Source: Eutreptiella sp. 'Long Island Sound 2002'
Lineage: Eukaryota; Protista; Euglenida
Direction of reading: 5' to 3'
DNA length: 64,000 nt
NCBI GenBank assembly: GCA_964036045.1
Contig: OZ038378.1
Span: forward strand, 104,904,001 to 104,968,000
Part shown: positions 3,291 through 22,700 of the stretch, in pieces
Layout of the letters: each line of letters opens with the position of its first letter
Numbering within the stretch: position 1 is the stretch's first letter
Notes under the pieces: model-generated
The model's input: only the letters and a program-made list of their open reading frames with translations
What the model was told of the DNA's origin: nothing
Databases searched by the model: none
Translations under genes and position numbers: made by a program

Positions 3291-3816
3291 GCTTCTGGTT
3301 GTCTTTATTCTTGGGGGGGGGGTGTCGTTGTTTCCCCTGCAATTTTCCTTGTCGCCGGGTTTGGCAGGGCAGAGCATGTGCGGGCAGTGCAGGGCACGGC
3401 TGAGCAGGGCAAAGCAGCGTGCAGGTATATATTTTTCAATTATGGTATATACTTTTGCTGTCTTGTGTTTGTTTTTAATCTTGGCAGTTGAGGGGGGATG
3501 GGAAGGGGGCAGTGGAAGGGCAGGGAGGGGGCATGGTAGTAAATTCTCATCCCATTTTCCGTTGCTGAACTAAATGCAAATATTCGCAAATTCTGGTTGT
3601 CATTCAATACCGCGTTGTTGCACATGCAGACACATGTAGGTTGGGCTGGGGAATTGTGGAGTTCAATTGTTTTGGGCCCAGGATGAAGCAAGACCCGGGC
3701 AGACTGGCATGAAGCCTTCTGACCAAAATGTTGACATCTCATTAAAGAGAGTTATTATGCCGCTTTCTTCGGTTTCTCAACATTTCTTGGGGGTTTCAAG
3801 GCACTGAAATGCAATT

Positions 3817-4712: not shown

Positions 4713-5093
4713 TAGTTTGATCTTAAGAAATTTATCTTCTTAAGATGAACCATTCATCTTAAGGTGAAAAGCAAGAAGAAAAATAAGAAAAAAGATCTAC
4801 TGAACTTTTTCTTTTGGGTTCCCCCTTTTTGCCTACACTTTTTTGTAGTTTTACAGTTCTGGGGACTCTTTGCACCTTTGCAGTTGTAAACACTTACATT
4901 TATCATTGCAGCTACGAAGTTGATGCATTGCTTGATTGATCATTAGGATTTGCCCAAATCAAAAATCCACCCCCTATTATTGAACACATAGCCTTTTGTT
5001 TGCCCGATTTTTTCAGAGCGATGAGAACCGCAATTCAACAACTACAAACAGCAATCAAGAAGATAACACGTCAATACTCAGCTTATGGTGACA

Positions 5094-5295
5094 TGGACAC
5101 ATGTGAGGACACCCTCCCACCTGGGACACATGGACCGGGTGGCCGCGACAATGCCTTCCCAAGCACATGCGGGAGCGGCTCAAGAGGCACCTAACATAGG
5201 GCAGTGGGAGGGACAGGACGTCCCCTTGGTAAGACCTTCTTCCTGCACCGTCAAAGGAGGCATCCCGAGCTCCCGAAAATACCTACCTACCTACC
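5094..5295 (+). mobile_element. 202-bp 5'-truncated non-LTR retroposon insertion with a (TACC)4 tail
   Basis: 16-bp TSD TCAGCTTATGGTGACA at 5078-5093 and 5296-5311, and tail TACCTACCTACCTACC at 5280-5295. Removing the insert joins ORF 5000-5194 in frame to ORF 5389-5760. Confidence 0.85.
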
Positions 5296-5936
5296 TCAGC
5301 TTATGGTGACAATGCTGCCAGATTACTAGCGGCTTTCTCTGATGGTTCTACTTTTGGTCGCTCCCTATTCCACCAAATCAACAACAAAATGCAACTCACG
5401 GCAAAAAGTGTTGAGCTGCACGATTTCACAAAAAACTGGTGTAGTCCAATACAAGCTGTGTGCTTGATTGTGGCACTTGGCCTCTGCCGGGCAAAATACA
5501 GGCACCTCCTGTCCTTTGCAAGTGCCAAGCAGCAGGCCTATTTCAATGCCACGGGGTTCGTGTTCCCAATTTGTCCCCGGGTCGACGGACTGTGGAGGAT
5601 ACATGAAAAGGTCTCACAACCCTTTCTGCATTTGAGTCACCTACATGGTGCAACAACACCGTCGCAATTTCCTGGCCACTCGAAGAATGATTGGAATATG
5701 TGCAGTCCCAAGATGCTATCTGGAACACTGTTGCAGACCCGCAGGATGGTATCACATTGATTATCCGAGGCGATGGTTATCCGGTTGCGGTTTGTAGTTG
5801 GACACAGTTAAATGTGTCCATCATGGACCATGGTCGTCATGCAAGGACAACCAGCCACATGTGGGTGATTTCACAGGCCTATGCAAGCGACAAGGACATG
5901 GAGGACCTGAAGATTCCTTGAAAAACCAATCTGGAG

Positions 5937-6015
5937 GTGTGCTGCGCTGCATTCTTCTTAATGTTTCATCGTAAGATGAAATTTTAATCGTAAAATAATT
6001 CTCTCTTCCCTGCAG
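5937..6015 (+). other. Predicted GT-AG intron with a palindrome triplet
   Basis: GAG|GTGTGC...TCTCTTCCCTGCAG|GCG; contains TTCATCGTAAGATGAA at 5965-5980. Confidence 0.55.
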
Positions 6016-7048
6016 GCGGTTCAGCAAATCTTGATGACTGGTTGCATTTCTCTGCGGTGTGGTATGGTGCCGGGTACCTGCAAGTTTGGTGGCAAAACCT
6101 GTTTCTCTGTGGTATCCTCGGACTCAGTAGAACTTGGATGGTTCCTTCCCCATTCTCCTATATTCTTTGGTCTGATGCGCACCAAGAATTCACTGGGTGG
6201 GAAAGGCAGCGAACACCTGAGGAGGACGCACAATGCAGAGGCAAACTGCCCTTTGTACAGGCTGGAAAGGGAGTCAACTATGAACCCATGTTTGACACTG
6301 AAAGATCATCATTTTTCCCTTGTATTCTACACATCATGATGATCTGTGGTAAGCTGATCTTATCTCTTACACGCAAGGTTGCACTGGACCTGCCCAACGA
6401 CAGGGTGCGGCTGCCAAAAGCGACGTTCAAGGCTGCCAATATCCGATGGAGGGGGTTGCACAAGGAGTATGCACCAGATGGCCAGGAAGTCAAGCGTCTG
6501 CTTTGCGCTTGGGATGCAGTGGCACACGTGTTGCGCATTCACAGATCGGCAGCAGATGAGGCAGTGCGGCAGCTCGGTGAAGTACTGCGCGAACTGTATC
6601 ACTCTGGGGCCCCGGTTGATGGCTTCGAACATCGGGTGGAGCTAGCGGCACGCAACTTCCAGTTGCATTGTGTTCCCCATTACAAATCGTCGTATCTGTA
6701 CATCCTCATCCATGACATGAAAACCATCATCAGCGAATGTCGCAACTTGAGAGTCGGTGTGGCGATGTTTTCAAACAACCTGAAAGAAACCGTGAATGCA
6801 ATTATGAAGGGAAAACACCTCCAGCAGAGCAGCAGAGGGGCTGGTTCTGCAAGAGAATATGGATTTGGAAAAGCCTCTGCACTAAGGCAGACCATTCTGC
6901 ATGTTTTTCTACTGAATCATGCACATCTGGGTGCCCATGGCGTGCCACGACCCTGCACATCACGTCTGGCATCACTGGATCGCTCAATACAGAAGCCAAA
7001 CTGGACCAAGACTTCGGAGGATTTCTGGAGTTCAAGAAGTGGAAAGAG

Positions 7049-7289
7049 GTATGCCGTGAAAATAATGATGATACTAACAATAATAACAATAACAATAATT
7101 TTTTCAAAAAAAAATTTGAAATTTTTTTCGTCGGGAAAATTGATCTCAAATTTTCATCTTAAGAAGAAAATATTGATCGTTAGAAGAAAAATTCGTCGTA
7201 CGAAGAAAATCATCGGAAAAAACAGAAGTAATTGCAAAACCAGAAAAAAAGTGTATTTTTTGCCGAGAAAGCCATTTCTGCCACCTCAG
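7049..7289 (+). other. Predicted GT-AG intron with a palindrome triplet
   Basis: GAG|GTATGC...CCACCTCAG|GCC; very AT-rich. Splicing joins FKKWKE to AHKQAP in frame. Palindromes at 7153, 7173 and 7192. Confidence 0.75.
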
Positions 7290-8096
7290 GCCCACAAACA
7301 AGCTCCAGCAGCCACGGTGACTCCAAGCAAGGAGCTGCCAGCTGCAGATCAATTGGTTCACACACCAACACAATTGGCTCAGCACCCTGTGCGACAACTT
7401 GAACTGAGTGCCACAGACAGCCCACGCAGTGCACTTGGCAGCCCCCCTTCTCGAATGTCTGGCTACAAGCTATCTAGCCATGAGAAGGTGGTCCTGGAGG
7501 AATGCCGGTTGAACCAAATGTTTTTGAAGTGCCTGGAGGATGATGTTGATATTCCTGGGCCGTCAACACCCATTTACACTGACCCTACCGTGGTGCACAT
7601 GACACTCAATCATGCTTTTGGTGGTTGTTGGAACAAGCTTACGAAGCAGCACCAGAGCATGAGCCTGGATGCCTGGGTTACAGCAAATCAGCTGGCTGAC
7701 CAACGACCTTTTGGTGTCCCATTGACTGGAAAGCAGAGAGAAAATCCACCCTGTGAGCCTCTGGTGCATCCAACCGCCCTGCTAAAATTATCGGGAGTCA
7801 TCTGGAAATTACATGGAGTTGTTGAGCTTCATGCTGAAGCGGGTGAATGCATGCTATGGTTTTCCAGCACCCCCGCACCTGACGGTTGGAATATTGCTAT
7901 CCCTGAGGGCAAGCAGAAAGGGAGACCTCCAGTGACATCTGCGCCACCACCTGCTATGAGATCGACATCTGCACCACTACAAGAAGCAAGTGAACCTCTA
8001 TCAGCAGTAGCAGCAGCACCAAATTGGAGCCCGACGTTGATGGCAGCCGTGACTGCTCGACTCGGGGAGAAGGCAACAAAGCAGCGCCAATATGAG

Positions 8097-8247
8097 GTAG
8101 GCAACCTGTGAAGAGGTGCGCGCGTAACGTGCAACGATTCATATATATAATTCTTCGTCACACGAATAATTCATCCAAAGAAGAAAGCAATTCGTCGTAC
8201 CGTGAAACGGTACGAAAAATGTCGTTCATTCAGTGCTCTTTCCTCAG
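8097..8247 (+). other. Predicted GT-AG intron with a palindrome triplet
   Basis: GAG|GTAGGC...CTCTTTCCTCAG|GTT. Splicing joins QRQYE to VEGVECS in frame. Palindromes at 8154, 8170 and 8191. Confidence 0.8.
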
Positions 8248-11200
8248 GTTGAAGGTGTTGAGTGCTCAGCTGTAGGAGTTCGATTTGTTGTGGGCAATAT
8301 TGGTACTGACCTTGGGGTTCAGCATGTTTTCACTGCAGGAGGCATCCTAATTTCACTGAGACGTGCACCCGCTCGAACATTGGGGATGCTACAAGCATTG
8401 GAGACAGATGAGAACGCAGCAAGAGCAAGGCAGCACGAGCAGAAAAAGGCTGTTCACTGGGAGCCCTGGCAGAGCCCAGTGAAAGCGGCAACAACAACTG
8501 TGAAAATTGCAAAGCCCATTAACCCCAATGCCATGCGGACATGGTTTGCCCTCCAGGAACAAGCCACAAGGACGGGCACACAAAAGAGTAATGCAAAAAG
8601 TAATGAAAAAAGCGAACCGACAAAAGCAGCACCACGAGCCACCAGAAAACGCAAGTGGGAATCTGAGTCTGAAAACGAGGAGTCGGAAGAACCTGAGAAG
8701 GATGAAGGTGACGACGAGGAAAAGGAAGATGAGAGTGATGCCAGCGATGAAGGCGTCACCCAAACAACTCCAGCCAAAGGAATGAAGTGGTTGTATGTCC
8801 CATACTAGGCGGAGGCCACTAACGAATCGAAGGTGGCACCAGGGATTGCTCGTCGATTTTACGAGCCTGGAGCAACAAAAGTATCTGACGAACTAGTGGC
8901 TGAAGCGGAGGGGACTAAGGGCACTATCGATTGGCTTCCTGACGATAGCATCGACAAGAGCTGGAACGTGGAAGGTCAATACCTTGCTGCTCGCATCGCG
9001 TTTTGCACTCCGAAAGAAGCCAAGCTTTACCGCAAAGGCATGACGCTGGCACTGAAGAAGCGCAAGATGAAAGAACAGCAGCAGAAGGAGCGCAAGGCCC
9101 ACAAGGTAGGCAAGGCAGAAGCTGCTGCAGAACCAGTTGCACCACGAGCGCCAGCTGCAGATCAAGAAGGGCCCGAGGAACAAACAGATAACGTGTCAGT
9201 AGGTGCAGGTGCGAGTGGTGCAGCGCCTGCCGGTGCAGAGGGCAACTGAACGTATCCATTTGGATTGCCATTGACTGTTGGAAGTGACTGTTACGACTTT
9301 CACTGTTACTGTGTCACATTTTGGTGCGGATTTTTGCATGTCGCTTCTGTCGCGCTACATTCATCGTAAACTTTCATCGTACGACAAAATTTTTCGTCGT
9401 ACGATGAACTTTCTGTGAAAAAAAGGTTCCGTGCAAATAGTTACAGCGACAGACTGGCCAGCGCGTGTTGGAGGGGGCGGTGGATGAGCTGGACGTAGCG
9501 TTCTCCGCCGGTCTGGCTTGCGCACCAAGCGCTGCCAGTTGCGCTCACCCAGTCGACGGGAGAATGGTGAGCATTTTTGTCTGCTCCAACCTGGGCATTT
9601 TGATCCGGCGCTGGGGGTTCTCCGTGGTTGACATCTGCCGGCGCTGTCTCCCACTGGATCCGCCGTGGCCGCCGTCTGCTGTCATCGTGGAAGACCACCC
9701 GTTGCGCCGCAGGGGGCGCCGTGCGACTTTGGCTCCGGGCACTCGGCGTTCCCATGGTCCCCCAGCGCTGTTCTGGCCTCCGGGGGGATAGCTACCCAGT
9801 CTCCATTCCCGGGGTGTGCTCACCGCTGAGTTCCAACCCTGGCTGGGCCAACAGCCGGAGGGGGCTCTGTTGTGGACTGTAGGGGGAGTAGGCTGTAGTG
9901 GCTCTGCGAGGTGCTGGTGCGCGCCAATTTTTCTCGGGGGTCCCAGGTTCTTGACCGCTGGCGCTGGTGCCCCGTGGTCCATTTCGGGGCGGCTTGCCCT
10001 CGGGGACGGTCGGTCCGGATCATCCAGATATGGTGCCTGAGCAGGGCATCCCGGATGCGGAGGGCCGCCCTCAAGTGCCATCGCCGGTGCAGACTGTTCA
10101 GGTCGTCCGCCGTATCGACCCCCATGTGTGCCACAAGGCAGCCGGCCACCTAGCGCCACTGGCTGAGGTGGTCGATGGTAGGGTGTGGGGCATGTGGCCC
10201 CCCCCTGGTGGTCAAAATGGACGTCTGCCATGATGTGAGTCCTGTTCATGATGTGTTTGATCTCCTTGAGCAGCCACCGGGCCCAGAACTGGAGGGTGAG
10301 CTGCTCCGTGTTGTTGGTCCTGGGGACCCGAGGATCTAGGTCACAGGCCAAACCGCCCCCTGCTTCCGCGCTGGGGTCTTGGGCCTCGGACTTCGACTAG
10401 TCCAGGTTCTCCTGTCTGCAGGATGGGGCGATCCGTGGAGGCAGACGGTCTGCTGGGCTGCTCGTGGCGTTGGTGGCCGCCGGCGCACGGGCCCCATGGG
10501 CCCGTGTGGCCTGTACGGGCGGGTCCGTTGCCTCTGTGGGTTGCCCCTATGCGTGACCGTCACCCGCGGCGGCTGTGCGGCCGGCGACCTCCGGTCCCAG
10601 TACGGCATAGTTTTGACGAAGGTGCACCTGGCGGGATGCTGAGGCGGGGTCCCGCATAGAGGTGGCAGGTTCCGTGTGCGGCGTCGCAGGGTTGGGCTTT
10701 GATGGGGGCATCGGGCCACCGGTGGAGGTCCTGTCCCTGCACGACGCCATCAAGGTCTCAAATTACTCATCATTGCGGCGTTGCCGCTCCGTCGGTTGCC
10801 CTTGTCCAGTGGCCACTGCGGGCTCGTTGAAGATCAACGCCAGGTCCTTCGCCGCTTCTGGACCCCGGGCTGGTTGGTCGTCGCGTCCCCCGCCGTGCAC
10901 TATGTCGCGGCAGTGCTTGCATGTTTGTCCGCGGCTGTGGGTTTGAGCAGGCCGGCGTCGTCGGTCGTTTCCTCTGCCTGTTCCCCATGGGTCGGTACCA
11001 GGGGAGGTGTCGGCCGCCTGCTCAGCCCCCCGTGCCCTCGTTCTCCGTGCCTGGTTGTTCGGTGTCCTCCCCCTCCCCGCCTGCACACGCCTCTGCGTCC
11101 GGCTGGTCGGTGGTCTGTGGGCAGGGCGCCCCACCAGCGGTGAGGGGTGGGGCATGTCGACCCCTCCCCGATGGTCGAAGATGATGTCTGCCATGGTGCG

Positions 11201-11403
11201 GGTCCTGTTCATGATTTGTTGGATATCCTGGAATAGCCACCACGTCCGGACCTGGATGGTGAGCTGCTTCGTGTCAGTGGTCCTGGGTACTCACAGATTC
11301 AGGTCACAGGCCGCCCCACGCTCCACTTCTGTGCTGGGGCGGTGGATGTCCCCCTTGGACTTCGCCTAGTCCAGGTTCTCCTGTCTGCAGGGCGGACGCT
11401 CTG

Positions 11404-11948
11404 TCACATAGGTTTTTGAAGGCAAAAGTGTTAGTTTATTCTGAAAACTAAGAAGATGGCGGAGTGACTTGTTTTTGGGCTTAAATATCATGCCAACCAT
11501 GCTGCAAAACCTATTTTGGTGAGTCTGGCACCGCCAAAATAGGGTGCAGGGGCCTTGAAGGGAGCCCCCAAGCATACAGCATTCAGATTCTTGGGAGAAT
11601 ATTGGCAACGTTAGGCCATTTTTTGACGCATAATGTCTTTTTTCACGCCAAAGAGGCCCTGAAAAACCTATCTGCTGGGTCCAATAATTTTCAATACATG
11701 GCTTTCTGCGTCAGACATCTGACAAATAGGGTAAGAGGGGGCTTGTACAGACCATTAGAGTCCAAAAAACAATTTTTTTGCCCACAATTGTAATTTGTAT
11801 GCACTTTTATGTCATTTTCTGGCAACAAATGGGCTTTCTTTGGCTGGGGCGGCCCCGAATCTCTAATTATCAGGCTTCCTAACCCTGCAACACATATTTG
11901 TTTGAGTCCAGCACCTGCGAAATAGGGTGGGGGGCGTTTGTGCAACCA
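11404..11948. mobile_element. AT-rich insertion, probable relic of a DNA-transposon end
   Basis: It interrupts the ~950-bp unit relative to the paralogous units. CGCCAAAATAGGGTGCAG (11532-11549) resembles the reverse complement of the left end of the 12053-20324 element. No TIR or TSD found. Confidence 0.45.
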
Positions 11949-13144
11949 CCCGCCCGCTCGGCGTGCTGATTGCCGCCAGCGCACGGGCCCCATGGGCCTT
12001 TGTGCCCTCAACGCGCAGGTTCTGGTCCGCTGTGTCCGTGGATTGCCCCTCACTTAGCCCACGCAAACTGCACCCTGTTTTGCGCGCCGAACGCGCAAAA
12101 AAGGACCGGTTCGCAACAGGGCAAAAAAACTATTTTTTTGGATGTTTCATGAACGTGATTTTAGACGTAGTGAAATAAATTGCTTTTTTCGTGTTGTGCA
12201 ACTCCGTGTTCCTCAATGTGACGTTTTTTACATTTCTCTGGCGTTCTGAGTGCGCGAGGCCTCGCGCACTCAAGATAGCGAAAGCAGAGTTTATCACGAA
12301 ACGTAACAACCCGTAAGGACTGGCTTTTGCGGAAATACGCAGCTCCCACACGGTATTAAAATTAGGATTGTGTTGACCAGGGAGCATTGGAAGTGTATGG
12401 CTGTCGGACTTCCCATGTTAGGGGAAACACATGTACTGTAAAGTGAAAATAAAATACAAATTTAAGCAACCTGAGTGCGCGAGGCCTCGCGCACTCAGGT
12501 CACGTTATGTATTGAATTTTCAGACTGGATGTGACGCGTACAATTGCAGGTACAGTACGAGACGGACAAACACGTTTGATTTTTCCGGTGTATATGTGTG
12601 TAGACACCATGTTGATCAGATTCAACACGGTATAGAACATTGTTTCCCCGGAAACAATCAGTGCGCGAGGCCTCGCGCACTTAAATGACAGAAGAAAATG
12701 AAAAAGCGATCAAGCTAGGCTACGCCGGTATTTACATTCCCCTTCACGTCTACCACCTGTGACAGTCGATTATACATCGGTAACCTTCGTCATATTTTTC
12801 AGGGGATCAGGGGAATGATTTGCTTTTTTCCAACAGCCACTCGATGGTAGACGTGTCCGGTTTTAATAGCGGCGTAGCCTTCGTTGACCGATAGACATGG
12901 TTTTTTTTTCCAACTGGGTTTAAAGACGGACGCAGAACAGGAAATTGTGGTTGCGAAAACAGTTTGCGGTTACTGGGAACGGAGCGCACGCAGACACCAA
13001 ATCCAATTTGCGGCGACAGCACACGCACCAGAATGACGACAGGAAAAGGCCAGATGTTTTCTAATACATTTTTTTTAAAGGTCGCTGTGCGAAACGATAA
13101 CCAACATATGTGCGCAAATATAATTCCACAGAGAAAGACGCAAA

Positions 13145-15142
13145 ATGCCACTTCGAGCCAGAAAATCCGTAGAGCAACGCATGATTGCAGAAGTAAGCAA
13201 AGGAGCAGCAGCACTACGAGAGGCATGCGCGGCAGAACCAGCATACCAAACAGCAGGTGACCTATGGAAAGGACTGAAACGGAACGACCTGGCGGCGCAA
13301 CTGGTGTTAACATTTGCACAGCGACTCAGGTTCAACAAAAGAACGCGCCACAGTTTACCAGCAGCTAAACGACAGGAGGACAAGCGCTGGGTGCGCATTT
13401 TGCAACAGGAGGGCTGGAACCTGTACCTGTTGATGCGTCAACGGGCAGTACCAAACAGGAAAAAACCGGGAAACACAACAGGGTACCTGACGCAAACAGA
13501 AAGACGAACAAAAGTACGACTCGGGCAAGCAGACGCTGCCGCAGACACAGTGGACGAACAGGCAGCAGCAGCACTTAAAGCAACTTGGTCACTGGTGCTT
13601 TCGTCGTGTTGCGTGCTGTGGATAGACAACTGGTACCGGGCACAATACACGACACACCCAGACGAAAGTGACCGGTCGCAAAACTGTACTGCAATGGCAG
13701 TACTTCAACTGAAACAGAGGCCCACGTATTGGGCAGGACATCCAGCCATTGAGGAACTGGCAGCACGGATAACGACAGTCGCAAGGGCTCTGCAACAGCG
13801 TGAACGGAGAATCCACCAGACATTGCGTGACATGGGGTATGCAGATGGGTGTACACCAGACGCTGGAAACGTGAGAGCGCCGTTGGATGTGAGGAGGGAT
13901 GCAAGGACTGTACAGGCACCGGTGTGGCGCCCGTTTGCCCTGTCCAAAGAGAAGGTAACTTGTGGTGTTGGTCTGTTAAACTTGTTACACTTTGCAAGGG
14001 ACGTAGCACAACAGACAAACAGAGTTCTACCGCTGTTGGTTGACGAAAACATACACTACAGGGTACTAAAGTTGTTGTACGGTGCCAAGAACCAACGATG
14101 GAACATGCGTGCATACCTGCGTTACGTGCCTGTAGTTTACGGTGTCTGGCATGCCTACAAGTTCGTTGTTACTCATACTTTTCGGGTGTTCTGGCCTATT
14201 CTAACCTACCTACGGAAAGGTCTGCTACGACCTGGTTCCACCATACTATCATACCCCAAACTGATAGTTATGGAAAAAACTATTGCTGCGCTGATGCTTG
14301 CCACACCCCGAATACTACGCCCGTATCGGCGCAAGGCACAAGCTGCAACCGCGATCAGTGGTCGTGACACTACGCATGCCAACAGGGCAGCAGTGGCAAA
14401 CGCAGTCTTGCATTTGTTGTCGGATTGGTGCCCGTTGTTGTTGTACTTGGGTCACCTGGTACGGGAGTGCAATTGGTCGGGGGAAAACAACGCTACAGGG
14501 ACACGAGCTCAGGAGGTGTTGCAGTTGAGTTTGTGTCTGTTGCGGAGGCTGCGTCGAGGACCGTGTGACACCATACTGAAGTACGAGCGCACAATCATGT
14601 GCACATTGTTGTACAACAGCAAGTGGCACCAGGACCTGCCCGGTCAGGCACACTCAGAGGAGTTTGGAGAAGGGATGTTGAGCAAGCTGGTGCGGGACAA
14701 GGCGAGAAACACGGGTTCTGTTACTGTTCAGGAGGTGGAAAACCATTACTTGTTGCTAAAGGTTGGTCCTGGTGGAAAACGCGTGGGGGTGCAAAACGTT
14801 CCCAAGAACCTGGTACACAGCATGCGACAACGACTGACCAGATTTTTGGCGACAGACCGGATATGCATGGCCTATGTGGAATGGGAGTCGGACAGAGTAA
14901 GCACGGTTGCACCTTCTTGGCCGCGGAGGTTACCGAGATTTCCGCCCTCACCTACACAACCCCTCGGTTACGACCACTACCGGCTACTTGGTCACAGCGT
15001 ACTAGATGCCCTCATTGACCAGAAAACAAATCCCACCAACCAACTGAAACGGAAACTGGATGCTGTTGTGGGACAGAGAACAGATATGGATGCCGACAGA
15101 CAGGAAGCAGCAACACGCAACGTGCGGCAACGCTTGCGGTAA
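13145..15142 (+). CDS. Putative DDE transposase (665 aa, intact)
   Basis: Uninterrupted ORF inside the TIRs. CCVLWIDNWY, LPLLVDENIHY, YGVWHAYK and HSEEFGEGMLS are spaced like a D..D..(G-x-x-H insertion)..E RNase H-fold transposase. Confidence 0.8.
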   Translation: MPLRARKSVEQRMIAEVSKGAAALREACAAEPAYQTAGDLWKGLKRNDLAAQLVLTFAQRLRFNKRTRHSLPAAKRQEDKRWVRILQQEGWNLYLLMRQRAVPNRKKPGNTTGYLTQTERRTKVRLGQADAAADTVDEQAAAALKATWSLVLSSCCVLWIDNWYRAQYTTHPDESDRSQNCTAMAVLQLKQRPTYWAGHPAIEELAARITTVARALQQRERRIHQTLRDMGYADGCTPDAGNVRAPLDVRRDARTVQAPVWRPFALSKEKVTCGVGLLNLLHFARDVAQQTNRVLPLLVDENIHYRVLKLLYGAKNQRWNMRAYLRYVPVVYGVWHAYKFVVTHTFRVFWPILTYLRKGLLRPGSTILSYPKLIVMEKTIAALMLATPRILRPYRRKAQAATAISGRDTTHANRAAVANAVLHLLSDWCPLLLYLGHLVRECNWSGENNATGTRAQEVLQLSLCLLRRLRRGPCDTILKYERTIMCTLLYNSKWHQDLPGQAHSEEFGEGMLSKLVRDKARNTGSVTVQEVENHYLLLKVGPGGKRVGVQNVPKNLVHSMRQRLTRFLATDRICMAYVEWESDRVSTVAPSWPRRLPRFPPSPTQPLGYDHYRLLGHSVLDALIDQKTNPTNQLKRKLDAVVGQRTDMDADRQEAATRNVRQRLR

Positions 15143-15390
15143 CTGACACCCGCAGTGCGCGAGGCCTCGCGCACTAAACGTTATGAAAACAGGTATGTAA
15201 TGCGATGTGAGTGCGCGAGGCCTCGCGCACTGAGTACTTCGCTAAGTGCCGTGGATTAAGTCACAACAAAGACGTTTGTGGAACAGATTTCCGAAAACGA
15301 CCTGCAAAATACCGTTTCGACTGATTTCAGAGTTCAAATGACCGTGTTTCATGTCATGCCATTTGCCCTTTTCAGGTATTGTTTGGCATC

Positions 15391-18300
15391 ATGAGTGAAC
15401 CAGGGTCGCCAGAACGTCCAGTAACAGACGCAGAGGCCATGGAGTCGTCACCAGGGACCGACCACGGGGACACGCCGAAGAAAGGACGCAAGAAGAAGGG
15501 TGAGAAGAAAGCAATACCGGAGATGAAGCTCACAGTCGAAGTGGCACAGTGGCTGCGGCAGGAGAATGGTAAAGCCGTGAAGGTAAAGATTGCTGATTTG
15601 AAAATTGACAAGACCAAGGAGCGCGGACAGATCCGATCCATCAACTATGACGACGTTGCCAGAAAAGTGGCAGGATACCAAGCACTGCCACCAGCTGGAC
15701 CGTTGCGCATAACGGCGTGGGAGGATGGTGGTATGACTCGCTTCGCTTTCGATCGAAGACGGTTCTTCTTTTTGCTTCGGTACATGATTTGCTTTGCAGA
15801 TGGCTCCCTTTACGTTCTGAATGGTCAACATGGCACAGAAACATGCAGAAAGATTCAGCAACAGCGTCTCGAAGAAGGCAAAGAATTGGAGGATTGGCAG
15901 GAGTTTTGCTACGTTGACATTCTGAAGTACGAAACGCCTTGGAGGATCCGTGCCAAGGTTGCAGGATTGCAACAAGCTGGCAGCCAGTCTGTGACGTGGA
16001 TTCCGCTCTCCGAGGCGCTGGACAACATGTTGTTGTACATTGAGGATCAGAAGCGGGAAAAAGAGCCACAAGATTTCGAGAGGTTCAAGATTGCTGTTGT
16101 CCAAGCTGCCGTCAACTCTGCGTTTCTTGCACCCGAGGCTTTGGAGGAAGCAGGACATACAGTATGTATTCGTGTATCGCACGGTTACAGTGCGCGAGGC
16201 CTCGCGCACTCCATGACACTGTCTCCCCCCGCAGGACTCGACATTCAAGAATTGGAGGGACATCTTCTCCCTGGCGTATTACTGCGGCCGTGAGGCGGTT
16301 ACTGGTATGAGGAACCTCGAGAGTAAGAGCAAGAAAGAGGACGTTACAAGGAATGCCTTCAAGAGGCTGGAGGGGCTGCATCTACCGAGCCTATTGCAGA
16401 AAGTCTGTGCGCACATGAACCTGAAGGACTCGACCTTGAAGACCACCCAGAACTACATTGACGCGCAGATTACGGAACAATGGGTTATTTTCCATCTTGA
16501 CCATCCGGACAATACGCAGCATGTCAACCAGACCGCAGGTATGCGTCAGTGTCGCAGCTGCAGTGCGCGAGGGCTCGCGCACTTCACCACGTTTGTCACA
16601 TCCGTACAGCTGCCGATGCGAAGATCCGAGCAGAAGTCGCAGCACTGGGCACGCCGCAATTGAAAATTGGGCTTGGAAATTGGGGTTATTGGGTGGACGC
16701 AAAAAGTACGAAGTTTCGGTCGCCCTGGCCAAAATGGAAGACGTTGCTCACTGCACCTCTGTGGCGCACTGGGGACAAGGGCGCACCTCCATTACCACAG
16801 ACGTTGGCCGTGCGGAAACAACTGCAAAGGAAGGTTGAGGCACCATCATCGGCACCTTCACAGACACAGCTCAGTAATGGCGATGTGATCAATGTCTCCA
16901 AGTCGGACGAGCAAGGGATCAAATACGCTTTGACAGCCTGCCGTATTGAGAATATTGAAGAGACACCGCCAGGCCGTTTCCGGGATCTGCAGTACCCGTT
17001 GTGGATCATCAACGCTGACCTTTTCATTGAATACGACTCTCCAGGATTTGTTCCGAAGTGGCTGTTCGATGTGATGATGCTGGGGAAAGACGTCATTTTC
17101 TATGGCGAGGCTGATGTTGTGCACCGTATTGGCCGCGAAATGCAGAGGCTCTGGCGTATGGAGAAGGACAAGGATCCAACCACAGTGCCATTCTACCATG
17201 TTCGGTTGCCGGTGTACTCTTGGTTATCGGGTCCCGTGACCAGCAGTACGTATCATCGGCAAAGATTCAGCAACAGCGTCTCGAAGAAGGCAAAGAATTG
17301 GAGGATTGGCAGGAGTTTTGCTACGTTGACATTCTGAAGTACGAAACGCCTTGGAGGATCCGTGCCAAGGTTGCAGGATTGCAACAAGCTGGCAGCCAGT
17401 CTGTGACGTGGATTCCGCTCTCCGAGGCGCTGGACAACATGTTGTTGTACATTGAGGATCAGAAGCGGGAAAAAGAGCCACAAGATTTCGAGAGGTTCAA
17501 GATTGCTGTTGTCCAAGCTGCCGTCAACTCTGCGTTTCTTGCACCCGAGGCTTTGGAGGAAGCAGGACATACAGTATGTATTCGTGTATCGCACGGTTAC
17601 AGTGCGCGAGGCCTCGCGCACTCCATGACACTGTCTCCCCCCGCAGGACTCGACATTCAAGAATTGGAGGGACATCTTCTCCCTGGCGTATTACTGCGGC
17701 CGTGAGGCGGTTACTGGTATGAGGAACCTCGAGAGTAAGAGCAAGAAAGAGGACGTTACAAGGAATGCCTTCAAGAGGCTGGAGGGGCTGCATCTACCGA
17801 GCCTATTGCAGAAAGTCTGTGCGCACATGAACCTGAAGGACTCGACCTTGAAGACCACCCAGAACTACATTGACGCGCAGATTACGGAACAATGGGTTAT
17901 TTTCCATCTTGACCATCCGGACAATACGCAGCATGTCAACCAGACCGCAGGTATGCGTCAGTGTCGCAGCTGCAGTGCGCGAGGGCTCGCGCACTTCACC
18001 ACGTTTGTCACATCCGTACAGCTGCCGATGCGAAGATCCGAGCAGAAGTCGCAGCACTGGGCACGCCGCAATTGAAAATTGGGCTTGGAAATTGGGGTTA
18101 TTGGGTGGACGCAAAAAGTACGAAGTTTCGGTCGCCCTGGCCAAAATGGAAGACGTTGCTCACTGCACCTCTGTGGCGCACTGGGGACAAGGGCGCACCT
18201 CCATTACCACAGACGTTGGCCGTGCGGAAACAACTGCAAAGGAAGGTTGAGGCACCATCATCGGCACCTTCACAGACACAGCTCAGTAATGGCGATGTGA

Positions 18301-19758
18301 TCAATGTCTCCAAGTCGGACGAGCAAGGGATCAAATACGCTTTGACAGCCTGCCGTATTGAGAATATTGAAGAGACACCGCCAGGCCGTTTCCGGGATCT
18401 GCAGTACCCGTTGTGGATCATCAACGCTGACCTTTTCATTGAATACGACTCTCCAGGATTTGTTCCGAAGTGGCTGTTCGATGTGATGATGCTGGGGAAA
18501 GACGTCATTTTCTATGGCGAGGCTGATGTTGTGCACCGTATTGGCCGCGAAATGCAGAGGCTCTGGCGTATGGAGAAGGACAAGGATCCAACCACAGTGC
18601 CATTCTACCATGTTCGGTTGCCGGTGTACTCTTGGTTATCGGGTCCCGTGACCAGCAGTACGTATCAGTTCGACGAGCACTGTATGTGGATCGGAACAAC
18701 GAGTCGCTGGGATAAGCAGGTATATCTGCTTCTTTCGATTGTTACGATGCCGTTGTGTGCGCGAGGCCTCGCGCACTGCTGCCTCCGTTATTCGTCTATA
18801 TTCATCACATTTACAGTTGCCGAACTATGTGTCGTATTCCGCTGGACATTTCGAAGAGATGCAAGAGAAGAACCTCGGCGGTTTCATGCCTCTGATTCAC
18901 GTGCTGTGGTACCTGGACAGATACGTTTTGTGCAGTGGGCTTCCTGATGCAGTGGTTGTTGTGGACGACACGCCTGCCATGGCCGCAAAGATTGCGATGT
19001 CTGACCTCAAAACTAAAGTGGCGTTTCTGGCTGTGTCAACGATCAAGCAAAAGGACCTAGGGAATGCCGTTGGAGGTGCTCTGCAGCATGCAATCGTGAT
19101 GCGGTACATGCTGGAGGCCGATCAGACGGAGCAGGGAGCAACAGCTGCAACTTGGGATACTCAAGAAGAGTGGCTCCAGCGTGGCATTCCACTGTGGGTT
19201 TTGGACAGCAAACGAGGGCATGAAGGGCACCAGCAGGTGCATGCTGCAGAAGCCGTCCAGCAAGATGTCGTGACTGAGGCCCCCGCTGAAGACACTGAGC
19301 CTGGTGCGCCTGCACCTACCTTGCCAATGCAAGCCAAGATGAAGAAGACTACCAAAGTTGTACCAACCCAGGGTACTGCAGCCGGAAAAGGAACACCCTC
19401 GAGTACCAAGAAGCAAGCAAAAGGGAAAGAGAAGGAATCGGACAAGCCCGCGGAATCAGACGACGACGATACTGACGAGGAGTCAGAAGAAGACGATCTG
19501 GAGCAAGTACTGGAGACCCAGCAGAAGCGCAAGCGGGCATCCGCCTCTCACTTCGATGCAAGCAGCCCCGACTCTGGTAAGGAACAGTCCAAGAAGAAAG
19601 CGAAGACTGCTGCCAGTGCTACTGCAGAGTTCAAGCCGCCCTCGCGTTCTGGTACCCTGCCGTCTCGAGGTACCGTTGCCTCTCCAAGTGGGACAAGTAC
19701 AACAGCAAGAAGCCTGGGTTCCAGGTTGGCTAAGGTTGCTGGACCGAAGAAGAAGTAA
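15391..19758 (+). CDS. Multi-exon accessory protein: ParB/Srx-like N-terminus, degenerate circularly permuted methyltransferase-like domain and K/E/S-rich tail; frame broken by an internal duplication
   Basis: GT-AG introns at 15731-15799, 16162-16234, 16539-16609 (duplicates 17574-17646 and 17951-18021) and 18720-18816 each join exons in frame. Peptides: GQIRSINY...YVLNGQHG, YPLWIINADLF, KDVIFYG, DEHCMWIG, FMPLIHVLWYLD, DAVVVVDD. Confidence 0.65.
15849..18667 (+). repeat. 1412-bp-period tandem duplication with apparently identical copies
   Basis: 15849-17255 is repeated at 17261-18667 with a 5-nt filler TCGGC. ORF translations are identical at an offset of 1412. Confidence 0.95.
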
Positions 19759-22700
19759 GTCACCATTAACCCAAGTGTTACGCCTCTTTTTGCAGTCATG
19801 AGTGCGCGAGGGCTCGCGCACTCGCCTTCGACGCGAATGCAATTATATGCCCTTAAAGGGTTGTACATTTTTGCCAAGCTTTTATCTCAGTGTTTGTACG
19901 TTGTGCACTTCGTGTCCTGTTTTTGTTGCCCTCTGTACACAATTGTTTCCATGACCTTGAGTGCGCGAGGCCTCGCGCACTCAGGTACACAAAAAAGCAA
20001 TTTATTTCGCAGGACAAACATAGGTGCAACTGGAGACCCGCAGAATGTCATATTTTGAAAATGAGCTCCCGAACAGGCACGCACCAGTTGGCTTTTGAAA
20101 TACAAAAACGACAAGATTGGTAAAACACACCCCTCAAATCAGACAAAATAATAGTTTATTTTGATAAGCAAAAAGTGGAAAAAAGCAGCAAATTGGGTAA
20201 AATTGTATTTTTTCGGTGGCATCTGGGCCATGTGTGTTGCAAATGTCCAAAAAAAATAGTTATTTGGGCGGTCATTTTTTAGGTCCTTCTCTTCCAAAAG
20301 GGGGTGCAGTTTGCGTGGGCTAAGCCTCAGTGTGCCCGTCACCCGCTGCGGCTGTGGGGCAGGCAACCGCAGGTCCCAGGGCGGCATAGTTGCGACAAAG
20401 GTGCACCTGGCAGGATGCTGAAGCGGGGTCCCGCATAGGGGTGGCAGGTTCCCTGTGCGGCGTCCCACGGTTGGGTTTTGATGGAGGAATGGGCCCACAG
20501 CGGAGGTTCCGTCCCTTCAGGAAGCCGTGAAGGCGTCAAATGACTCAACGTCGCGGGGTTGCCAGTCTGTCGGTTGCTCTTGTCCAGTAACCCCTGAGGG
20601 CTCAACGAAGATCTACACCAGGAAGTTTGCCGCTTCCGGAGCCCGGGGTGGTTGGTCGTTGCATGCCCCCCTGTGCGCTATGTTGCGGCAGTGTTCGGGT
20701 GGGCACGTTTGTCCACGGCTGTGGGTTCCGGCAGGCTGGCGTCGTTGGTGGTTTCATCAGTCTGTCCCCCACCGGTCGGTCTTAGGGGGGGGTGTCGGCC
20801 ACCTGCTCGGCCCCCCGTCCCCTGGTGTCCCAGCCCGGTCGGTCGGTGTCCTCCGCCTTGCCGCCTGCACACGGCTGGTGGCTGGTCTGTGGACAGGGCG
20901 CCCCATCGGCTGTGAGGGGTGGGGCATGTCGCCCCCTCCACGGTGGCCATGGTGCGGCCATTGTTCATGATGTGTTTGATATCCTGGAGCAGCCACCAGG
21001 TCCGGAGGTGGAGGGTGAGCTGCTCCATGTGGTTGGTCCTGGGTACTCACGGATCCAGGTCACAGGCCGACCCACGCTCCACTTCCGCGATGGGTCGGTG
21101 GGTGTCCCCCTTGGACTGCGGGTAGTCCACGTTTTCCTGTCTGCAGGCTGGGGCAATCCGTGGAGGCGGACGGTCCGCTGGCCCGCTCGTGGCGCTGGTG
21201 GCCGCCGGGACACGGGCCCCATGGACCTTTCTGCCGTCTATGCACATATTCTGGTCCCCTGTCTCCGTGGGTCGCCCTTCCGCGTGACCGTCGTCCGCAG
21301 CAGCTGTGGGGCCGGCGGCCGCCGGTCTCAGGGGGGCATAGTTGCGACGAAGGTGCACCGGGCCAGATGCTAAGGCGGGGTCCCGCATAGGGGTGGCAGG
21401 TTCCCTGTGCGGCATCGCACACTTAGTTTTTGACATGGGCCTTGGTCCGACAGGGGGGGGCCATCCCAGCAGGATGCCATGAATGCTTCAAAGCACTCGT
21501 CATCGCACGGTTGGCAGTCCATCAGTTGCCCTTGGCCAGTAGCCGCCGCGGGCTCATCGAAGATCAACGCCAGGACGTTCTCTGCTTCGGGAGCCCGGCT
21601 CGGTTGGTCGTTGATTGCCCCCCTCTGTGCGCTGTGTCTGCGGCAGCGTCGAGGTGGGCACCTTTGTCCATGGCTGTGGGTTCCGGCAGGCCGGCGTCAT
21701 CGGTGATTTCCCCAGTCTGTTCACCATGGGTCGGTACCGGGGGAGGGTCGGCCGCCTGCATAGCCCGCCGTCATTGAATTTCCGTGCTTGGTCGGTTGGT
21801 CTCCTCGGCCTCTCGCTGGTTGGTGGTCTGTGGGCAGTGCCCCCCACCGGCGGCGTCAGCCGTTTCCGGGCAGGCCGCAGGCGGCGCCCAGCCGTCGAAG
21901 CCTGTGTCTGTGGCAGCGCCCCGCTGGGTCGGCGCTGTTGGTGGGTTCCTGGACCTGTTCCCCGGGGGTTGGCGCCTTGGGGGCACTGGGCATTTGTTGG
22001 CCCCTTGTCCAATGTTTCCTGTGCTGTGCTGGTCGGCCTCTGCCGCCGCACAGTCTGCACGTGGCTCTACCCCCGGCTGATGGGTGGTCCTCTGTCAGGG
22101 CGCGTCAGTGATCGCGTCCGCCGGTGTTGGAGAGGCCGCAGGTGGTACTTTAGCGCCAAGACTCGCTGTCGGCACAGCTGCCACTTCCACATCCTCGACT
22201 GTCATTGGCTCAGTTCGACGTGAGCGGCCTGCTCCTCCGCATATTTCGCCTTCGACCTCCCTCGTGGAACGGGCTCTGGTGCCCACCGTGGAGCCCTTCC
22301 GCCGCGGGTTAGCCGCCTGTTTGGGTGGCGCATTCGTGCTGTCCGCGGCCCCTGCCTCCTGGCCCGTCCTTGGGCCACTTGGCACTGGTGGCGCGTGATC
22401 CGTGGTGTCGGCCGTTGCCTGCGTCGTGTCCATGTCCATCCCGTCACCCGACCCTGTCCTTGCTGCCTGGCGGCGTGTTGTGGGTAGGGTTCAGGCCAGT
22501 GCTATCCCCCGTGCGTGCCGCACCGTTGCTCAGGGCTCGTGGTGCGGCGCGCCTGTCGGCGCATTGGCGTCCGGGGTGGTGGCGCGCACCGGGGCCGGTG
22601 CCGGGGTCTAGCCCGGGGTTGGAGGTCTGTCAGGTGGCACGGCTGCTGTCAGCTGGGCTGGCGAACCAAGGTTCGGGTAGCGCTCTGGTTGCGCCTGTGT

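Follow-up and report, generated by a model that had tools for sequence, protein, structure and literature searches.

A 22-bp palindrome, AGTGCGCGAGGSCTCGCGCACT, occurs at 12 sites (24 strand matches) in the 64-kb window, i.e. the whole stretch of DNA that we analysed, against an expectation of 0 from shuffles. All 12 sites lie within one palindrome-bearing cut-and-paste transposon of 8,272 bp at window positions 12053–20324; none is found elsewhere in the 64 kb and none in a coding exon, as a first-pass annotation of the same DNA had claimed. Based on sequence comparison, structure modeling and analogy to bacterial systems, we suggest that the palindromes are cis-acting DNA sites to which the ParB-fold accessory protein encoded by the element most likely binds as a dimer, a reading that we give an even chance.

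With terminal inverted repeats (TIRs) and a target site duplication (TSD) of fixed length, the element is a class II cut-and-paste DNA transposon. A 5-bp TSD flanks three insertions, CCTCA at the window element, TCACA at locus L003 and ATAAT at a gene-less derivative in L011. The first 23 nt of the TIR are identical at both ends and in L001, L002, L011 and L012. Features of the element outside the accessory gene are as follows.

12048..12052, no strand: left TSD, CCTCA; the same 5 nt repeat to the right of the element, at 20325–20329
12053..12082, plus strand: left TIR, 30 nt, begins CTTAG, 93% complementary to 20295–20324
12249..12270, no strand: palindrome 1, left subterminal; distance to the left end 196 nt, the same within 1 nt in the L003 family and the L011 gene-less derivative
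12474..12495, no strand: palindrome 2, left subterminal; homologous sites in L001 and L002
12660..12681, no strand: palindrome 3, left subterminal; from motif scan and comparison with related loci
13145..15142, plus strand: intronless 665-aa ORF, probable transposase; from ORF analysis, many copies in one assembly
15154..15175, no strand: palindrome 4, intergenic, 12 nt past the transposase stop codon
15210..15231, no strand: palindrome 5, intergenic, in the accessory-gene outron, upstream of the trans-splice site
19801..19822, no strand: palindrome 9, 43 nt past the stop codon; X1 record positions 2715–2736, followed by matching downstream letters
19960..19981, no strand: palindrome 10, right subterminal; distance to the right end 343 nt (344 nt in the L011 gene-less derivative)
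20295..20324, minus strand: right TIR, pairs with the left TIR 12053–12082
20325..20329, no strand: right TSD, CCTCA, equal to the left TSD

The 12 sites start at 12249, 12474, 12660, 15154, 15210, 16189, 16562, 17601, 17974, 18756, 19801 and 19960. There were ten before a tandem duplication and 12 after it, because segment 15849–17255 was duplicated; the window scan reproduced the counts of the first-pass annotation. Its description of the sites as regularly spaced did not hold, however, as the gaps between successive sites of the original ten range from 56 to 2494 nt (225, 186, 2494, 56, 979, 373, 782, 1045 and 159 nt). Palindromes 6, 7 and 8 lie in introns 2, 3 and 4 of the accessory gene, respectively, and palindrome 9 is still present in the 3' UTR once the accessory mRNA is mature. 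A pair resembling palindromes 4 and 5, with a spacing of ~54–56 nt, is also present in L003, L004 and the second element of L012. A scan of JGI metagenome contigs did not find the 22-mer.

Judging from its sequence, the 665-aa ORF is the probable transposase of the element. It is multi-copy in one assembly, with families at 81–95% and about 45% identity, and contains conserved acidic motifs (W-x-D-N, V-D-E-N-I-H-Y-R and E-E-F-x-E). It gave no match in Pfam, no significant sequence or profile match in the PDB and no nameable DNA-binding domain. Its nearest ESM Atlas clusters are DUF6589, which we treat as a lead only; structural neighbors of the model of the top DUF6589 cluster include bacterial IS transposases. 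In families of this genome, the 2.5-kb transposase gene is free of the palindrome, so full coverage of the element by sites is not required.

The accessory mRNA is spliced-leader capped. In RNA contigs it begins at 15375/15376 with a spliced-leader tail, the longest loose end of which, ..TCTATTTTTTTTC (X3), then G, agrees with the last letters of the E. gracilis spliced leader (PMC6242988). Given the trans-splice acceptor at 15374–15375, the sites at 15154 and 15210 are upstream of the mRNA start. The first-pass annotation had suggested that site 15210 may lie in a 5'-UTR intron (15193–15375); we rejected this intron since the mRNA starts at the spliced-leader acceptor, and the segment is the outron preceding it. 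The accessory gene comprises the following features.

15374..15375, plus strand: AG acceptor of spliced-leader trans-splicing; contigs of three RNA runs (X1, X3, X4) start here
15391..19758, plus strand: accessory gene, 881 aa once the duplication is removed; predicted ParB-fold N-terminus; spliced mRNA; frameshifted in this copy
15391–15730, 15800–16161, 16235–16538, 16610–17255 joined to 18668–18719, 18817–19758, plus strand: accessory exons, from RNA contigs and removal of the duplication
15731..15799, plus strand: intron 1, GT..AG, without palindrome; joint skips 69 nt in four RNA runs
16162..16234, plus strand: intron 2, palindrome 6 at 16189–16210; joint skips 73 nt in three runs
16539..16609, plus strand: intron 3, palindrome 7 at 16562–16583, centre GGGC; joint skips 71 nt in three runs
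17256..18667, plus strand: tandem duplication, a 5-nt filler TCGGC and a 1,407-nt copy of 15849–17255 at 17261–18667
17601..17622 and 17974..17995, no strand: duplicate palindromes carried by the tandem duplication
18720..18816, plus strand: intron 4, palindrome 8 at 18756–18777, first base T; removal deduced from record arithmetic

All four introns begin with GTAT and end with AG and are of the spliceosomal GT-AG type. RNA support for the splice sites, which the first-pass annotation had called for, came from GT..AG joints for introns 1–3 and from record arithmetic for intron 4: in record 1 of X1, position 17255 falls at 1678 and 19801 at 2715, which fits only if 97 nt are subtracted. Intron 1 lacks the motif, as previously noted. 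Introns 2, 3 and 4 do carry one site each, but only introns 2 and 3, and not all three as had been stated, were duplicated. Likewise, the flanks reported for the palindromes in introns 2, 3 and 4 (27/24, 23/26 and 36/39 nt) are correct, whereas the centring they imply is exact only in this family; in two other families the palindrome is offset by 3.5–8.5 nt toward the intron 3' end, and we do not regard exact centring as conserved. Intron length is the same whether or not a palindrome is present. Contig word depth, a rough measure only, was ~224 for the accessory mRNA vs. 2–5 for the transposase region.

The two copies of the duplicated 1,407 nt show zero differences. The spliced length of the duplication is not a multiple of three, so the reading frame breaks; the accessory frame is open only with the duplication taken out. 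The duplication is absent from L001 and L002, as well as from the mRNA contigs, in which a loose end falls at 17255. Two other kinds of intron were ruled out. Non-conventional euglenid introns do not fit borders of GTAT..AG, an internal palindrome and unpaired intron ends. In the case of introner- or MITE-derived introns, the intron sequences beyond the palindrome are unrelated to one another, and the intron positions are common to families with or without the palindrome.

Comparison among families supports maintenance of the palindrome by selection. An 18-bp core, TGCGCGAGGCCTCGCGCA, is identical in the window family and the L003/L004 family (46% transposase identity), and it is also found, decayed, in the second element of L012 (35–41% transposase identity). 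The window family has the 22-bp form, with outer bases AG..CT, and the L003 family a 20-bp form, TTGCGCGAGGCCTCGCGCAA. In the L005 family, which comes from other samples (38% transposase identity), the site reads ACAC-CGCGAGGCCTCGCG-GTGT, with the 14-bp centre kept and the outer arms changed symmetrically; in the transposase gene of this family, a variant site is located in the part that codes for a variable loop. Identity of intron flanks between families is 0.45–0.51, vs. 0.43–0.53 for shuffles. Within the window family, the palindromes diverge by 3.6% and 2.3%, compared to about 8–10% for other non-coding DNA (Fisher p = 0.016 and 0.0004, respectively). When relatives were aligned as the first-pass annotation had proposed, the palindrome proved conserved and the flanks drifted, and its claim of selection is sustained by a core fixed across families of 35–46% transposase identity, flanks at shuffle level and low within-family divergence.

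The arrangement of three left, two intergenic, three intronic and two right sites recurs in L003, and in the window family as in the L003 family, 196 nt separate the left end from the first site. Introns of the accessory gene hold copies of the palindrome in every family examined. Which of the homologous introns carry a site varies between families, the intron 1 homologue of the L003 family having one. The idea of introns as carriers fits these data as well as does simple tolerance of sites that are harmless to coding sequence.

A gene-less derivative (L011:2419–3629, 1,211 bp) shares with the autonomous element only the TIRs and three palindromes, the sequence between them being visibly dissimilar in alignments. 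In this derivative, the only one compared, palindromes lie 197 and 344 nt from the ends, vs. 196 and 343 nt in the window element. Sites kept at fixed end distances in a gene-less derivative favor DNA sites over RNA hairpins.

An unrelated second element in the window, at 4717–9408, has palindromes of its own. We detected no ParB-like gene, no homologue of either protein and no Pfam match in it, so transposon palindromes here need not always pair with ParB.

The N-terminus of the accessory protein is predicted to have a ParB/sulfiredoxin fold. The ParB/Srx core fold was recognized in a predicted structure of the homologous N-terminal region from L005, built with a 60-row alignment (a single-sequence prediction reached a pLDDT of only 34.6). 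Fold matches of this model include KorB structures, with whole-model TM-scores <0.5, and its helices 156–211 align partly with KorB and pNOB8 ParB beyond the core, with no helix-turn-helix identified as such. A nearly invariant G-Q-x-R may correspond to the ParB arginine patch. The Pfam ParB domain matched none of five accessory exon pieces, the L005 and L003 homologues or 60 family members. A PDB profile search with the accessory protein gave sulfiredoxin as the best match, at only E = 0.15, and an ESM Atlas search with accessory exon 4 was uninformative. In L009 and L010, distant ParB-like relatives on short metagenome contigs with little context, no perfect palindromes with arms of at least 7 nt were found.

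We infer that a protein binds at the palindromes, and the identity of this protein and the consequences of binding are proposed here in the same spirit. A ParB-fold dimer would bind symmetric sites, as ParB does on parS or KorB on OB operators. The near-end sites, at fixed distances from the TIRs, would be needed in cis for mobilization and might help build or position an end complex together with the transposase. The intergenic pair and the copies in introns and the 3' UTR could be further loading or operator sites, and through such internal sites the protein may mark the entire element, regulate it or keep it together. Within the accessory gene, only introns would tolerate a site without a change in the protein. 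There are precedents for such a scheme: KorB binds palindromic OB sites on plasmid RK2, acting at a distance (PMC11790492), and for algal transposons with a ParB-like accessory protein, binding of this protein to repeats of the same element has been suggested (PMC12477816; bioRxiv 10.1101/2025.02.11.637652).

Alternatively, the palindromes might bind the transposase itself, as subterminal or internal enhancers like the repeats of Ac or the P element, with the ParB-like protein doing something else. Fixed distances to both TIRs, kept in the gene-less derivative, are typical of transposase cis requirements, and the clusters of three left and two right sites resemble known subterminal repeat arrays. 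However, the TIRs differ by family while the palindrome core is common, and with such TIRs the transposase is already provided with a site particular to its family. Transposase-binding repeats are also not usually located in introns or a 3' UTR; Pfam and PDB profile searches pointed to no DNA-binding domain in the transposase, and a symmetric 18–22-bp site would suit a dimeric ParB-type helix-turn-helix protein, with a predicted ParB-fold protein encoded next door. We therefore regard binding by the transposase as rather unlikely. We see a slimmer chance that the palindromes work at the RNA level, forming hairpins in outron, introns and 3' UTR that aid splicing, trans-splicing, stability or evasion of silencing. 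Folding predictions give each intronic copy an 8–9-bp G+C-rich stem with a 4-nt loop, in which the variable central base would sit, and sites 4 to 9 are in the accessory transcribed region or just upstream of the trans-splice site. Yet intron 1, which has no palindrome, is spliced all the same, with equal contig depth in X1, X3 and X4; site-bearing homologous introns vary by family, with the same intron length with or without a site; and sequence, beyond mere pairing, is fixed over 14–18 nt including the loop. Moreover, the assembled contigs of the accessory mRNA do not extend to site 10 or to any of the three left-end sites, and the derivative, gene-less and intron-less, retains three sites at unchanged end distances.

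Sites read by a host factor or host DNA modification, such as CpG methylation of a CpG-rich word, or kept uniform by functionless gene conversion, would account for an 18-bp core that is common to three families of one genome and different in L005 from other samples, and for several C-to-T or G-to-A mutations at CpG in decayed copies. They would not account for outer 2–4 bp that are family-specific and symmetric; homogenization alone leaves the conserved layout and end distances unexplained, and gene conversion would have to act on tracts of 22 bp, which is very short for this process. We consider a host-based origin improbable. The first-pass annotation had allowed that the motif could be an independent micro-element or common genomic motif, here accumulating in a transposon, and the unrelated flanks of the copies are as expected of separate insertions. 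In the window and six other loci (about 173 kb), however, 58/58 core sites (≤2 mismatches) are inside elements of the same group; site positions are homologous between copies and between families, and the copies are not flanked by target duplications or other signs of insertion. We regard this explanation as highly implausible.

Recognition of the palindromes by the element's ParB-fold protein invites comparison with known two-component systems. Like plasmid RK2 with KorB/OB, the window element is a mobile element with many dispersed copies of one short palindrome and its own, predicted, ParB-fold protein. RK2 carries 12 OB sites; multiple palindromes on the protein-encoding element, a feature of ParB-parS and KorB-OB modules, are present here as ten per element, and likewise in sister families. 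In contrast, KorB, a CTP-dependent clamp and repressor of the ParB family, comes from a bacterial plasmid, and the window element is a transposon that resides in eukaryotic chromatin; the two kinds of site are unrelated in sequence, and the accessory protein has no Pfam-level similarity. In En/Spm (CACTA), a transposase is accompanied by a separate, more abundant DNA-binding protein, TnpA, that reads short motifs near the ends and regulates the element. The two-protein design is similar, but TnpA lacks a ParB fold, and its 12-bp motifs are subterminal only and not perfect palindromes; we know of no intronic TnpA sites. ParB-like cargo with inverted repeats has already been reported in red and brown algal transposons, namely Bostrychia Plavaka PAG3 with adjacent inverted-repeat arrays and an Ectocarpus Sola1 ParB-methyltransferase gene (PMC12477816; bioRxiv 10.1101/2025.02.11.637652). 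These, too, are cut-and-paste elements of eukaryotes in which an accessory gene encodes a ParB-like protein. Their repeats, however, are described as tandem arrays beside the gene, unlike the single dispersed sites of the window element, whose transposase was neither Plavaka nor Sola by any test run and is DUF6589-like as a lead only.

More broadly, and as a possibility that we hold only tentatively, a widespread group of euglenid transposons may run a eukaryotic counterpart of ParB/parS or KorB/OB, in which the element's own ParB-fold protein reads the palindrome. The palindrome would be needed at the measured end distances for mobilization, and internal sites would be kept, with introns and one transposase loop as carriers, for self-recognition, regulation or holding the element together. 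If the ParB-fold protein does bind, a bacterial logic of self-recognition by one protein and many palindromes would have been taken up by eukaryotic transposons and be used at element ends and inside genes alike. The introns would offer a clean example of selection acting on their content for reasons at the level of DNA, and the ends would define a small cis module in which a TIR and a palindrome are a set distance apart. In annotation, this group of elements and their gene-less derivatives can be recognized by the motif, and it may provide a handle on how transposons in a very repeat-rich genome distinguish their own copies from others.

A search of the window with AGTGCGCGAGGSCTCGCGCACT, allowing up to three mismatches, returned 12 sites, while 0 were expected from dinucleotide-preserving shuffles of the window. 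The count and coordinates in the first-pass annotation were thus correct; the regular spacing it also claimed is absent. Nine sites are a perfect 22-bp palindrome or deviate from it at the central S position only, and the first base of the site at 18756 is T instead of A. At the same threshold, no copy was found in the rest of the 64-kb window, outside the main element.

Features of the main element and its gene-less derivative (window positions unless a locus is named)
12053-20324: main element, 8,272 bp; 30-nt inverted ends starting CTTAG; 5-bp target-site duplication (TSD) CCTCA
13145-15142: intronless ORF of the main element, 665 aa (probable transposase)
15391-19758 (+): second, accessory gene, with four introns
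17256-18667: tandem duplication including its filler
12249, 12474, 12660, 15154, 15210, 16189, 16562, 17601, 17974, 18756, 19801, 19960: AGTGCGCGAGGSCTCGCGCACT sites found by the search
L011:2419-3629: gene-less element, 1,211 bp, in a locus found via the accessory protein; terminal inverted repeats (TIRs) the same as those of the main element; own 5-bp TSD ATAAT

Window 15849-17255 is repeated in tandem at 17261-18667 with 0 differences over 1,407 nt and a 5-nt filler, TCGGC, ahead, which is why there are 12 sites rather than 10. After splicing, the duplicated segment has a length not divisible by three, which frameshifts the accessory gene in the window copy; an open 881-aa frame is restored once the duplication is removed. 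Neither the mRNA contigs nor two other copies of the family (L001 and L002) have the duplication, which might stem from a recent error in repair or replication, reflect a difference between strains or be an artefact of assembly.

Other palindromes occur in the window. A second, unrelated element at 4734-9408, with no homologue of either main-element protein and no Pfam match, has a 16-bp palindrome of its own, TTCRTCKTAMGAYGAA, in eight copies (up to two mismatches; 0.1 expected). The copies are grouped in clusters ~1-1.2 kb apart, and several copies look decayed through CpG transitions. A 17-nt palindrome, GCGATTCCTGGAATCGC, is present three times, ~1.9 kb apart, at 45997, 47900 and 49809. 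Just within the left TIR of the main element, at 12078-12100, lies a related hairpin-like word, TTTTGCGCG-CCGAA-CGCGCAAAA, with arms similar to the L003-family 20-bp palindrome (see below); the right end showed no counterpart.

Assembled contigs from four public RNA runs were placed on window 12053-17256. They bear out the intron borders of the first-pass annotation, as accessory introns 15731-15799, 16162-16234 and 16539-16609 are spliced out at GT..AG borders, with the first joint present in all four runs and the other two in three of the four. Intron 18720-18816 is likewise removed, since in one 2,756-nt contig window 17255 corresponds to record position 1678 and the 3'-UTR palindrome at 19801 to 2715, a distance that fits only without those 97 nt. 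The 5' end of the accessory mRNA lies at 15375/15376, with no cis-spliced 5' exon. Of the loose contig ends at this position, the longest, from run X3, is ..TCTATTTTTTTTC, then G, and matches the terminal part of the Euglena gracilis spliced leader, ACTTTCTGAGTGTCTATTTTTTTTCG (PMC6242988). The accessory gene is therefore trans-spliced, and the segment 15193-15375, previously regarded as a potential 5'-UTR intron, is its outron. The trans-splice acceptor is downstream of sites 15154 and 15210, and site 19801 is retained in the 3' UTR. Besides lacking the duplication, the mRNA has a single base difference from the window, and its source is therefore a sister copy or a strain without the duplication. 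Contig word depth, a rough expression guide only, was ~224 over the accessory gene versus 2-5 over the transposase ORF. In run X8, which bears a second organism label, one contig begins at 16863, preceded by spliced-leader-like TTTCTGAGTGTCTATTTCTTTTC, which suggests an internal trans-splice acceptor within accessory exon 4 at 16862-16863. A 4,014-nt contig (run X3, record 2) continues from the accessory mRNA into sequence that matches the right subterminal palindrome and the TIR (window 19842-20324), and then ~770 nt further. Either transcription reads through past the end of the element, or the library contained carried-over DNA.

The 665-aa protein is multi-copy in one ENA assembly (81-95% identity), with further families near 45%. 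We compared two copies of the window family (L001 and L002, the latter aligned only up to element position 6278), two of a family at ~46% transposase identity (L003 and L004), a family at 38% from other samples (L005-L008) and two loci found via the accessory protein (L011 and L012). The L002 copy carries a ~1.6-kb insertion at element position 3390, near the accessory gene start (locus positions 10264-11868). The L003 family palindrome, TTGCGCGAGGCCTCGCGCAA, has an 18-bp core identical to that of the window and different outer bases. Its layout is also that of the window family (three left, two intergenic, three intronic and two right sites), and in both families 196 nt separate the left end from the first site. 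L012 contains a further element (35-41% transposase identity) whose sites share this core in a form decayed mainly through CpG transitions; three of these sites are again left and two intergenic. The L005 family palindrome, ACACCGCGAGGCCTCGCGGTGT, retains the 14-bp centre with symmetrically altered outer arms. Several changes in decayed palindromes of L001-L004 and L012 are C-to-T or G-to-A at CpG, the pattern expected if these CpG-rich sites become methylated in inactivated copies.

Within the window family, palindromes diverge by 3.6% and 2.3%, versus ~8-10% for other non-coding and 5-7% for coding DNA (Fisher p = 0.016 and 0.0004, the copies being non-independent samples), in line with the earlier suggestion of selection on the palindrome. 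The claim that sites avoid exons holds for the window family and not for the whole group, since L005:1849-1870, inside the transposase ORF, is a palindrome variant, AGACCACGAGGCCTCGCGGTCT, encoding D-H-E-A-S-R-S in a variable loop with a 2-aa insertion relative to other families.

Accessory intron positions are common to the families, and the introns that bear sites vary. The palindrome is found in introns 2, 3 and 4 of the window family (intron 1 has none), in introns 1, 2 and 4 of the L003 family (intron 3 has a short remnant, AGTGCGCCGCACT), and in introns 3 and 4 of the L005 family, which lacks intron 1 and has one extra intron. Outside the core, homologous introns of two Euglena families are similar only at the level of shuffled sequence. 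The proposed centring of sites in introns applies to the window family only, to within 1.5 nt; in the two other families the site is off-centre by 3.5-8.5 nt, on the side of the 3' splice site. Introns of ~70 nt leave little room for site placement after sparing splice signals.

The strongest argument for the palindromes as cis DNA sites, at least near the ends, is the gene-less derivative in L011, which has transposed without genes or introns and keeps its palindromes in register with the ends. It has in common with the autonomous element the TIRs and three 22-mer copies, and nothing else. Measured from the ends, its sites lie at 197 nt (left) and 344 nt (right), compared with 196 and 343 in the window element, and its two right-hand sites are 156 nt apart (159 in the window element). 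In alignments, the sequence between palindromes is visibly unlike that of the window element, which shows that the conserved feature near the ends is distance, not flanking sequence.

ParB-family proteins are dimers that bind palindromes. Pfam contains no model matching any part of the 665-aa or the accessory protein, and so did not place the latter among ParB proteins at the sequence level. Among 1.84 billion representatives, profile searching identified 321 relatives of the accessory N-terminus. The L005 homologue, modelled with an alignment of 60 of these relatives (pLDDT 85.8), resembles solved structures of ParB, Noc, KorB and sulfiredoxin (Foldseek probability 1.0), and the Swiss-Prot models it matches are ParB and Noc throughout; these matches assign a predicted ParB fold to the accessory N-terminus. 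A helix-turn-helix after the ParB core is only partly supported, and the transposase appears DUF6589-like by language-model features only. KorB of plasmid RK2 is a CTP-dependent clamp on palindromic operators that acts at a distance (PMC11790492).

We propose, as the most likely reading and with about an even chance of being right, that the element's own ParB-fold protein uses the palindromes as parS/OB-like sites. End-proximal palindromes would count among the sequences needed in cis for mobilisation, and internal ones may be loading or operator sites that would survive only in non-coding stretches, within the accessory gene its introns. That the transposase reads the palindrome seems unlikely, and we consider it improbable that a host factor does so or that the copies reflect homogenisation without function. 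There is similarly little to recommend RNA hairpins, which fit poorly with the gene-less derivative, with the splicing of intron 1 without a site and with a predicted loop that is fixed in sequence. An independent micro-element is very improbable, given that ~173 kb of Euglena DNA contain 58 core sites (inner 18 bp) and all of them fall within elements of this transposon group.

A link between ParB-like cargo and repeats in algal transposons is already in the literature: transposons of brown and red algae have been described with ParB-like accessory genes, and in Bostrychia inverted-repeat arrays lie beside a ParB-like gene, for which the authors proposed self-binding (PMC12477816; bioRxiv 10.1101/2025.02.11.637652). 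What is new here is a core common to families whose outer arms have changed symmetrically, the conserved site layout and end distances, a minimal gene-less derivative, the spliced-leader and splicing evidence, and the turnover of sites among conserved introns.
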